A stretch of DNA of 63,075 nucleotides, filler included, from Olpidium bornovanus S191 (Eukaryota > Fungi > Olpidiomycota): assembly GCA_017911155.1 (NCBI GenBank). It is 33 parts of 33 records of this genome, joined end to end, with 100 filler letters (N's around TTAATTAATTAA, not from the genome) between each part and the next. Parts side by side here need not be neighbours in the genome. Positions count along the whole stretch, not along the records: positions 26,644 to 30,063 come from JAEFCI010001241.1; 32 more parts are not named here. One strand, given 5' to 3'. The notes under the pieces are model-generated. The model was not told where the DNA came from and searched no databases. It worked only from the letters and a program-made list of their open reading frames with translations. The translations under genes and the position numbers were made by a program. The stretch's first letter is position 1. Every line of letters begins with the position of its first letter. Shown piece after piece: positions 26,686 through 27,811 of this stretch.

Positions 26686-27811
26686 ACTTTTCGAGGTTCG
26701 CTTTCCACCGCTTCCTAAACTCCTCGACGGTCATCTTGTCTGGGCACATCACCGAACGAGCGGGGGGGTCGGCGGGGGAAAACGGTCGGCAGGGATAAAC
26801 GCGAGGGAACCTTTGCATTCGGGCGGCTTGGCCGGCGGGCCGGGGTGCAGACAAGACGGCGGGCGTATTGGGTTTTTTCGCCACTCACTTCCTTCGTTGG
26901 ATATGAGGCCGTTTTTCCTTTCGACTCCCTCTCTTCGAGAATTCTCTTCCCCGACCTTTGCGGGGTCGATGTGCAGAAGGAAAAACTCTGGTCGAACCGG
27001 AAAGGAGGAGGAGGAGGATCGACGAAACGCAGATTTCCTCGCGTAAGCGCGATTCGCGACCCAACTTCTCCGCAAAAAGCCCGCCCCGGCCCTCCCCCCA
27101 CCCTCGCACCTTTGATGCTCTGCTGCCCGAGGAGGTGCTGGGTCTGCATGCTCATCTGCGCGATCGATTTGCCGACGAGGCATTCCGAGTCGATGATGGC
27201 GTCCCAGTTCCCGCACCCGAACTTCAACAGCGCCAGCCGCAGGAGGTCTGCCTCCGGGCGGGTCCAGCCTTGGCCCCGGCGTCGGGGGGGTTTTTCCGAC
27301 GCCCGAAAAAGAGGAACGGGGGGGGGGGTTTTCGCGAAGAAGAAAAAAAAACGTCCGGAGAAAGTCGGGCCCGGCCGGCCGGAAGACCCGCGTTTTGGTT
27401 CCACCGGGGGGGGGGAGTGGGTGGATGGGGAAGGGGAAAAAAGGAAAGGAAATGGGAGGCACGGCCCGGTCAGCGTCCCTCGACAGAACGGCGGACGCCC
27501 CAAAAGGCGGACCCCGGGGGCGTCGGGCCACAACACACGGGCGCGCGCGCGCACACGCAGCATAGCAGAAACGCGGCGAAGATGGGGGAAGGTTTTCTGC
27601 TCACGTTTGGCGCGGCCGGCGACGGGGGCGAGGAAGGCCGGGGCAGACGCGTTTTCCGCCGCCGTTCCGCCCGTGACAAAAAGGGCCTTTCGGGCGAGTT
27701 CCGGGCCCTCGTCACGCGGGGGCCCCCCCCGCACGTACCTGGCGCGAGCGTGCAGTTCCAGGCGGTCGTCGAGGTGACGGAGCCGACCTGGGCTTCCCTG
27801 TCGTCGCCCAT
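26686..27811 (-). CDS. p1-like homeobox/HTH subunit of the MTA1c (AMT1) DNA 6mA methyltransferase complex; exons 27811-27739, 27268-27110, 26987-26889, 26739-~26686
   Basis: Phase-consistent GT-AG splicing gives MGDDREAQVGSVTSTTAWNCTLAPGWTRPEADLLRLALLKFGCGNWDAIIDSECLVGKSIAQMSMQTQHLLGQQSIKEFFLLHIDPAKVGEENSRREGVERKNGLISNEGNKMTVEEFRKRWKANLEK. This closely parallels ciliate p1 as I remember it (WNYTLSPGW...LFGIGKW...GCLPGKSIGQIYMQTQRLLGQQS). Confidence 0.8.

Follow-up and report, generated by a model that had tools for sequence, protein, structure and literature searches.

The eukaryotic 6mA methyltransferase complex MTA1c is composed of MTA1 (AMT1), MTA9 (AMT7), and p1, with p2 as an additional subunit in some lineages. 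Of these subunits, it is p1 that delivers the DNA to this ApT 6mA writer. In Tetrahymena, p1 (AMTP1) consists of an N-terminal domain (residues 16–128), in which a homeodomain fold is followed by a β-strand and helix α5, and a C-terminal helix (residues 152/154–184). The N-terminal domain is disordered in the free complex and closes over a DNA mimic opposite AMT1-AMT7, and the C-terminal helix binds the N-terminal helix of AMT1 (PMC9852454; bioRxiv 10.1101/2025.04.24.650485). The substitutions K57A and K101A were the most damaging mutations of AMTP1 (bioRxiv 10.1101/2025.04.24.650485). Among fungi, all symmetric 6mA was lost upon knock-out of p1 in Mucor (PMC11258239), and P1 of Rhizopus is essential, binds Mta1, and occupies linker DNA that is rich in 6mA and lies downstream of transcription start sites (PMC12019607). 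Two Asn residues conserved in P1 of early-diverging fungi have been linked to the recognition of AAC (Lax et al. 2025). Furthermore, p1 and p2 were found to co-occur exclusively with AMT1 in a survey of 231 eukaryotes (Romero Charria et al. 2025, PMC12695648).

Here, we analyzed a p1-like gene of Olpidium bornovanus S191 (assembly GCA_017911155.1). The window, i.e., the whole stretch of DNA analyzed, comprises 63,075 nucleotides in 33 joined parts, and the gene is located in the piece at positions 26644–30063 (JAEFCI010001241.1), whose GC content and GC3 were 65.8% and 0.82, respectively. By translation and reading of splice sites, a minus-strand gene was identified that begins with an ATG at 27811 and contains four small exons separated by three GT-AG introns, all of phase 1. 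When the three introns were removed, exon 1 and three open stretches lying in other frames merged into a single frame. The spliced exons 1–4 make up 127 codons, reading MGDDREAQVGSVTSTTAWNCTLAPGWTRPEADLL...RKNGLISNEGNKMTVEEFRKRWKANLE, with neither a stop nor a frameshift. The model was compared with RNA contigs from two runs, X1 (2022) and X4 (2025), which belong to two independent studies and have k-mer depths of 49.9 and 198.5, respectively. The features of the gene are as follows.

27812 to 27833, minus strand: 5′ UTR, minimum extent, from the ends of the RNA contigs (X4 at 27833, X1 at 27813)
27739 to 27811, minus strand: exon 1, coding, 73 nt, MGDDREAQVGSVTSTTAWNCTLAP and the first base of Gly25
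27269 to 27738, minus strand: intron 1, 470 nt, phase 1, cag/GTACGT..CAAG/gc, from the splice sites and a skip of 470 nt in the RNA
27110 to 27268, minus strand: exon 2, 159 nt, homeodomain/Myb-like three-helix domain, GWTRPEADLLRLALLKFGCGNWDAIIDSECLVGKSIAQMSMQTQHLLGQQSIK, from the match to p1 in the PDB
26988 to 27109, minus strand: intron 2, 122 nt, phase 1, aag/GTGCGA..CCAG/ag, from the splice sites and RNA
26889 to 26987, minus strand: exon 3, 99 nt, EFFLLHIDPAKVGEENSRREGVERKNGLISNEG, from alignments and RNA joints
26740 to 26888, minus strand: intron 3, 149 nt, phase 1, gaa/GTGAGT..CCAG/ac, from the splice sites and RNA
26688 to 26739, minus strand: exon 4, 52 nt, NKMTVEEFRKRWKANLE and two bases of a Lys codon, from RNA, splice sites, and alignment
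26644 to 26687, minus strand: start of intron 4, donor aa/GTTGCG at 26687, running off the piece; the RNA contigs leave the genome at 26686

Exon 1 bears the family motif (S)LWNxTLSPGW, which was aligned with residues 16–25 of Tetrahymena p1; on splicing, WNxTLxPGW is reassembled across the 470-nt intron 1. A Glu codon following QQSxx is split by intron 2. Exon 3 corresponds to the conserved block C-terminal of the homeodomain and carries the equivalent of Tetrahymena K101, and exon 4, which ends in phase 2, represents the start of helix α5 of the N-terminal domain. No ATG was present upstream of 27811 within the 5′ UTR at its minimum extent (to 27833).

The gene is expressed and spliced as predicted. 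All three joints (26739/26889, 26987/27110, and 27268/27739) were present in spliced RNA contigs of both X1 and X4, and the skipped segments had the ends CT..AC on the plus strand, which is GT..AG for a minus-strand gene. Within intron 1, the RNA depth was zero at 27358–27663. No base of the p1 exons differed between the RNA contigs and the assembly, the X4 contig began 22 nt upstream of the ATG, and the RNA depth of p1 exceeded that of the neighbouring gene. Two raw-read RNA runs of 2026 that carry the same species label contributed no reads to the stretch; they are no test of expression. The preliminary description had proposed four exons splicing in frame to this peptide and RNA-seq as a check of the junctions; the proposal was confirmed by our own translation and by the joints seen in the contigs of the two studies. 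At positions 26728–26885 of the window, an unspliced X1 contig over intron 3 was also observed, with a depth of 2.8 versus 49.9 for the spliced form. This contig reflects either retention of the intron in a minor fraction of transcripts or trace carry-over of genomic DNA into the library.

The gene extends beyond exon 4. The spliced contigs were 2402 and 2559 nt long and continued past exon 4 for approximately 2.1 kb (2152 nt in X4), and as they run on past 26686, the fourth donor at 26687 is the sole canonical solution. The first 30 RNA letters past this donor, read in frame with the end of exon 4, gave ...NLE-K-YGVTREEVAK, in which KYGVTREEVAK matches the family block KYGLSxEEI. A search of the window for the continuation of the RNA past exon 4 did not find it. 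The gene thus comprises five or more exons and is truncated by the edge of the piece, with exon 5 onward lying outside the window. It had previously been described as a four-exon gene at 26686–27811. Its four exons and the ATG end of this interval stand, but the gene is not complete in them: 26686 marks the end of exon 4 and not that of the gene. Separately, the RNA of approximately 2.1 kb past exon 4 is far longer than a protein of the size typical of the family (200–350 aa) needs; the excess could be explained by an extended C-terminus, by a long 3′ UTR, or by overlap with the transcript of a neighbour.

The identity of the encoded protein was investigated by comparison with solved structures and with protein databases. 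Exon 2 (53 aa) matched the p1 chains 7f4l_E, 7yi8_C, and 8xyl_C in the PDB at E 3e-12, covering p1 residues 24–75 with 30 identities in 52 aligned residues (58%). As this identity is to a solved p1 chain, a homeodomain/Myb-like fold can safely be assigned. The next-best match of exon 2 was TRF2 at E 0.09 (range for TRF2 and CHD1, 0.09–0.3), and the match to Pfam Myb_DNA-binding (PF00249) scored 17.2 bits (E 0.0057), below the gathering cut-off of 24.4; by the standard of Pfam, the domain is thus no canonical Myb repeat. Exons 3 and 4 are singly too short to be scored against the PDB or Pfam, and homology became visible only in the spliced protein. A family profile built from 29 relatives and the four exon peptides was then run against the PDB: it retrieved p1 of Tetrahymena with an E-value of 3.5e-71 and an alignment starting at residue 7, versus 9e-5 for the SANT domain of ADA2, 3e-4 for TRF2, and approximately 8e-3 for p2/AMTP2 (7f4l_B and 8xyl_D). 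None of the 15 family-invariant positions (29 of 29 relatives) is altered in the protein, which also contains the p1 signature GW..E...L..A...FG.G.W..I......L.GK...Q...Q.Q...GQQS. It also has the p1-specific flanks shared by the 29 relatives and Tetrahymena p1, namely LWNxTLSPGW upstream and LHxD...RKNGxIxNxG with the EE..R...N helix downstream. The resemblance to p1 noted in the preliminary description was therefore borne out by the PDB match, the family profile, and the intron positions described below, and the best matches were p1 rather than generic Myb/SANT proteins.

A HMMER search of 1.84 billion representatives yielded 318 proteins at E ≤1e-3, and the profile search yielded 625 proteins at E ≤1e-10. 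Residues 14–127 of the spliced 127-aa protein were aligned with the relatives at 45–59% identity, so that homology spans all four exons and reaches beyond the Myb-like domain. For relatives from Chytridiomycota, Zoopagomycota, and Mucoromycota, among them those of R. microsporus and Spizellomyces, the identity was 53–59%. The relatives, which are named "hypothetical" or "Myb-like domain-containing" proteins, were from Chytridiomycota (Chytridium, Nowakowskiella, Spizellomyces, Rhizophlyctis, and others), Monoblepharidomycota, Neocallimastigomycota, Zoopagomycota, Mucoromycota (including Rhizopus microsporus, Mucor, and Phycomyces), and Glomeromycotina; a few were non-fungal (Balamuthia and Mucochytrium). 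In a maximum-likelihood tree, the protein was placed inside the fungal clade with an SH-aLRT of 95, its position within the clade being unresolved, and its terminal branch was the longest in the tree (3.56 versus a median of 0.41). Close relatives were not found in the protein databases, the relatives listed by the profile search having at most 59% identity, and no related locus was found among metagenome contigs. Searches for homologues with the exon 2 region as part of open frames of 300 and 447 aa found no protein. A search of protein clusters with exon 2 returned generic Myb clusters only, and that with the FAR1 domain of the neighbouring gene returned FAR1 clusters. Taken as a whole, the piece almost certainly contains the 5′ part (exons 1–4) of an expressed p1/AMTP1 orthologue.

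Database entries of this family often read through intron 1 (after ...SPG) or intron 2 (...QQSTA followed by GK...), as seen in entries P0008, P0012, P0021, P0016–P0018, P0022, P0023, P0027, and P0028. These read-throughs indicate that public proteomes often contain p1 orthologues in truncated or mis-annotated form, a possible source of bias in surveys of their presence and absence.

Two annotated orthologues, those of Spizellomyces sp. 'palustris' and Rhizopus microsporus, were mapped to their genomic loci for comparison of gene structure. The Spizellomyces protein (SpCBS45565_g03506, P0217) is approximately 55% identical to that encoded here, and the positions and phases of its first four introns were the same as here in every case: NCTLSP/G (phase 1), GQQSTA/E (phase 1), NSG/G (phase 1), and NKE/K (phase 2). 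The lengths of exon 2 (159 nt) and exon 4 (52 nt) were likewise identical. Synteny was not conserved, as the neighbours in Spizellomyces are MIF4G/MA3 and mitochondrial carrier genes, whereas the neighbour here is a FAR1-domain gene. With R. microsporus, two of the four introns, the second (QQSxx/E) and the fourth (NxE/K), were common. These common positions back the orthology independently of sequence scores and confirm the donor of exon 4.

The protein has the same N-terminal architecture as p1/AMTP1 of Tetrahymena thermophila (7F4L chain E, 7YI8 chain C, 8XYL chain C, and 9O6K). Common to both are LWNxTLSPGW, the homeodomain/Myb-like domain with QTQ(R)LLGQQS, the LxxD...RKNxxIxNxG block, and the EE..R...N helix, and the recognition helix is "ciliate-like" (GKSIxQ...MQTQ), as in Tetrahymena p1. 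The region corresponding to the AMT1-binding helix of Tetrahymena (residues 154–184) would be encoded beyond the piece. A further difference between the systems is that Tetrahymena also has p2, whereas many fungi lack it. The DNA-contact residues K44, K46, K57, R68, K101, K114, and K118 of Tetrahymena p1 correspond to N45, D47, K58, H69, K102, V115, and R119 here; the equivalents of K57, K101, and K118 are kept as basic residues, and the other four of the seven (K44, K46, R68, and K114) are replaced. P1 of R. microsporus (P0163) belongs to the same family and is approximately 55% identical over residues 13–127. Compared with this and Mucor P1, the branch of the protein here is much longer. The Asn pair of fungal P1 (N70/N74 of P0163 by our own mapping) is Ile/Ser here and Ile/Tyr in Tetrahymena, whereas Spizellomyces P0217 retains it. 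Other changes of conserved residues are R to H in QTQR, P to V in CLPGK, and SL to TA before WN. As for p2/AMTP2 and generic Myb/SANT/TRF proteins, they share the class of three-helix homeodomain/Myb-like folds but not the flanking motifs of p1.

On the model of Tetrahymena, Mucor, and Rhizopus, exons 1–4, which correspond to Tetrahymena residues ~7–127, would encode virtually the entire N-terminal domain (residues ~16–128). This domain, flexible alone, would shut over the major groove of DNA opposite MTA1-MTA9 when the substrate is bound, while the C-terminal helix, presumably encoded beyond the piece, would dock on MTA1 at the N-terminal helix of the latter. Once assembled, the complex would methylate ApT on both strands, chiefly in the region that follows the start sites of active genes. 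By homology, the likeliest mechanism is that the protein clamps the DNA for a complex of Mta1, Mta9, and P1 that writes symmetric ApT 6mA. As to whether p1 acts here inside a complete MTA1c, that is, whether the writer has been retained, we lean towards a positive answer, and the one ground for doing so is the published co-occurrence of p1 with AMT1 (PMC12695648).

Other readings of the gene were weighed against this one. A generic Myb/SANT or telomere-repeat-type DNA-binding protein, or p2/AMTP2, might account for the weak match to Pfam Myb_DNA-binding and for the presence of TRF2, CHD1, and the SANT domain of ADA2 among the weak matches in the PDB. However, p1 led every other solved protein by 10 orders of magnitude with a single exon and by more than 60 with the profile, in which p2 reached just E 8e-3; homology extends on both sides of the Myb-like domain (WNxTLSPGW, and LHxD...RKNGxIxNxG...EE...N with KYG), and the intron positions agree with those of p1 orthologues. 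We regard such an identity as scarcely credible, and by the PDB scores, the profile, and the intron positions it was ruled out for practical purposes. A transcribed but decaying gene, i.e., a pseudogene or relic having no protein function, would be in keeping with the long branch, the substitutions in QTQR, CLPGK, and before WN, and the location of the C-terminal part beyond the piece. Against decay, the 127 codons over four exons are free of stops and frameshifts, the splice sites are canonical and in use, every invariant position is retained, the frame stays open into exon 5, where the expected motif appears, and the RNA is deeper than that of the neighbouring gene. This reading is very improbable, and it was rejected on the intact frame, the used splice sites, the invariant positions, and the continuation into exon 5.

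More weight has to be given to the possibility that the protein is a true p1 left on its own. In this case, the host lineage, such as Blastocladiomycota, would have lost its MT-A70 subunits, and p1 would serve as a stand-alone chromatin or transcription factor outside 6mA writing. Among zoosporic fungi, AMT1 and AMT6/7 were listed for Spizellomyces and Gonapodya, METTL4 alone for Batrachochytrium, and none for Allomyces and Catenaria (PMC12695648). In the last two, MT-A70 genes of every family were reported absent (PMC12019607; PMC12695648 supplementary table), both studies thus reporting Blastocladiomycota to be devoid of MT-A70 genes, and loss of Mta1/Mta9 was inferred in this phylum (Lax et al. 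2025, PMC12019607). The high GC content of the piece, the very long branch, the replacement of four of the seven DNA-contact basic residues and of the Asn pair, and the lack of a close relative in any database search also fit an orphan p1. On the other hand, the protein retains all 15 invariant positions as well as the two lysines most sensitive to mutation, the gene shows good expression and correct splicing, and p1 was found only with AMT1 among the 231 eukaryotes (PMC12695648). In addition, the reported absences were based on annotated proteomes, from which a gene may be missing just as the one here, with its small exons and short contig, may be. On balance, we consider an orphan p1 unlikely. 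It is similarly doubtful that the host is a blastocladiomycete; if it were, this would be either the first p1 without AMT1, retained and repurposed after the enzyme was lost, or a sign that the loss of the 6mA writer reported for the phylum is an artefact, small multi-exon genes on short contigs having been annotated incompletely. Even with the long branch, the replaced contact residues, and the changed Asn pair counted against it, the best explanation overall, which we hold to be probable, is that the gene is the 5′ part of an expressed p1/AMTP1 orthologue acting as a subunit of MTA1c.

The preliminary description further suggested that the gene bears on when fungi lost 6mA. This was overstated, because p1 orthologues were already known throughout early-diverging fungi, chytrids included (PMC12019607, PMC11258239, PMC9852454). 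The gene is one more member of a family documented in hundreds of early-diverging fungal genomes, and the finding is fairly ordinary unless the catalytic subunits turn out to be absent from the host. Nevertheless, since surveys find p1 only with AMT1, an intact and expressed p1 can be used as a cheap marker predicting that a symmetric-6mA system is at work here, and the gene offers a concrete target for knock-out or tagging. Moreover, genes of this kind, with four exons of 52–159 nt, GC-rich introns, and a location on a short contig, can escape surveys of ORFs and proteomes, and such missed small-exon genes bear on any claim that zoosporic fungi lost the 6mA machinery in particular lineages.

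The neighbouring gene was located on the minus strand at 28128–29700 of the window and encodes a Q/H/P-rich protein with a DNA-binding domain of the FAR1/WRKY-GCM1 type (Pfam FAR1, E 2.4e-6, residues 151–228 of a 233-aa ORF). It has two exons separated by a 95-nt GT-AG intron (28872–28966), as observed in RNA contigs of both studies, and ends approximately 290 nt upstream of the start of the p1 transcript. In this gene, the RNA contigs of both studies differed from the assembly at 28706, 28821, and 29380 (G>A, G>T, and G>T, respectively), and one run had an extra T after 28147; the base differences probably reflect strain or allele variation. At the high end of the piece, runs of G and C of up to ~30 bases were present at 29785–29812 and 29985–30063, and shorter G/C runs were present within the p1 introns. 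These homopolymer runs probably explain why the assembly is broken into short contigs here.
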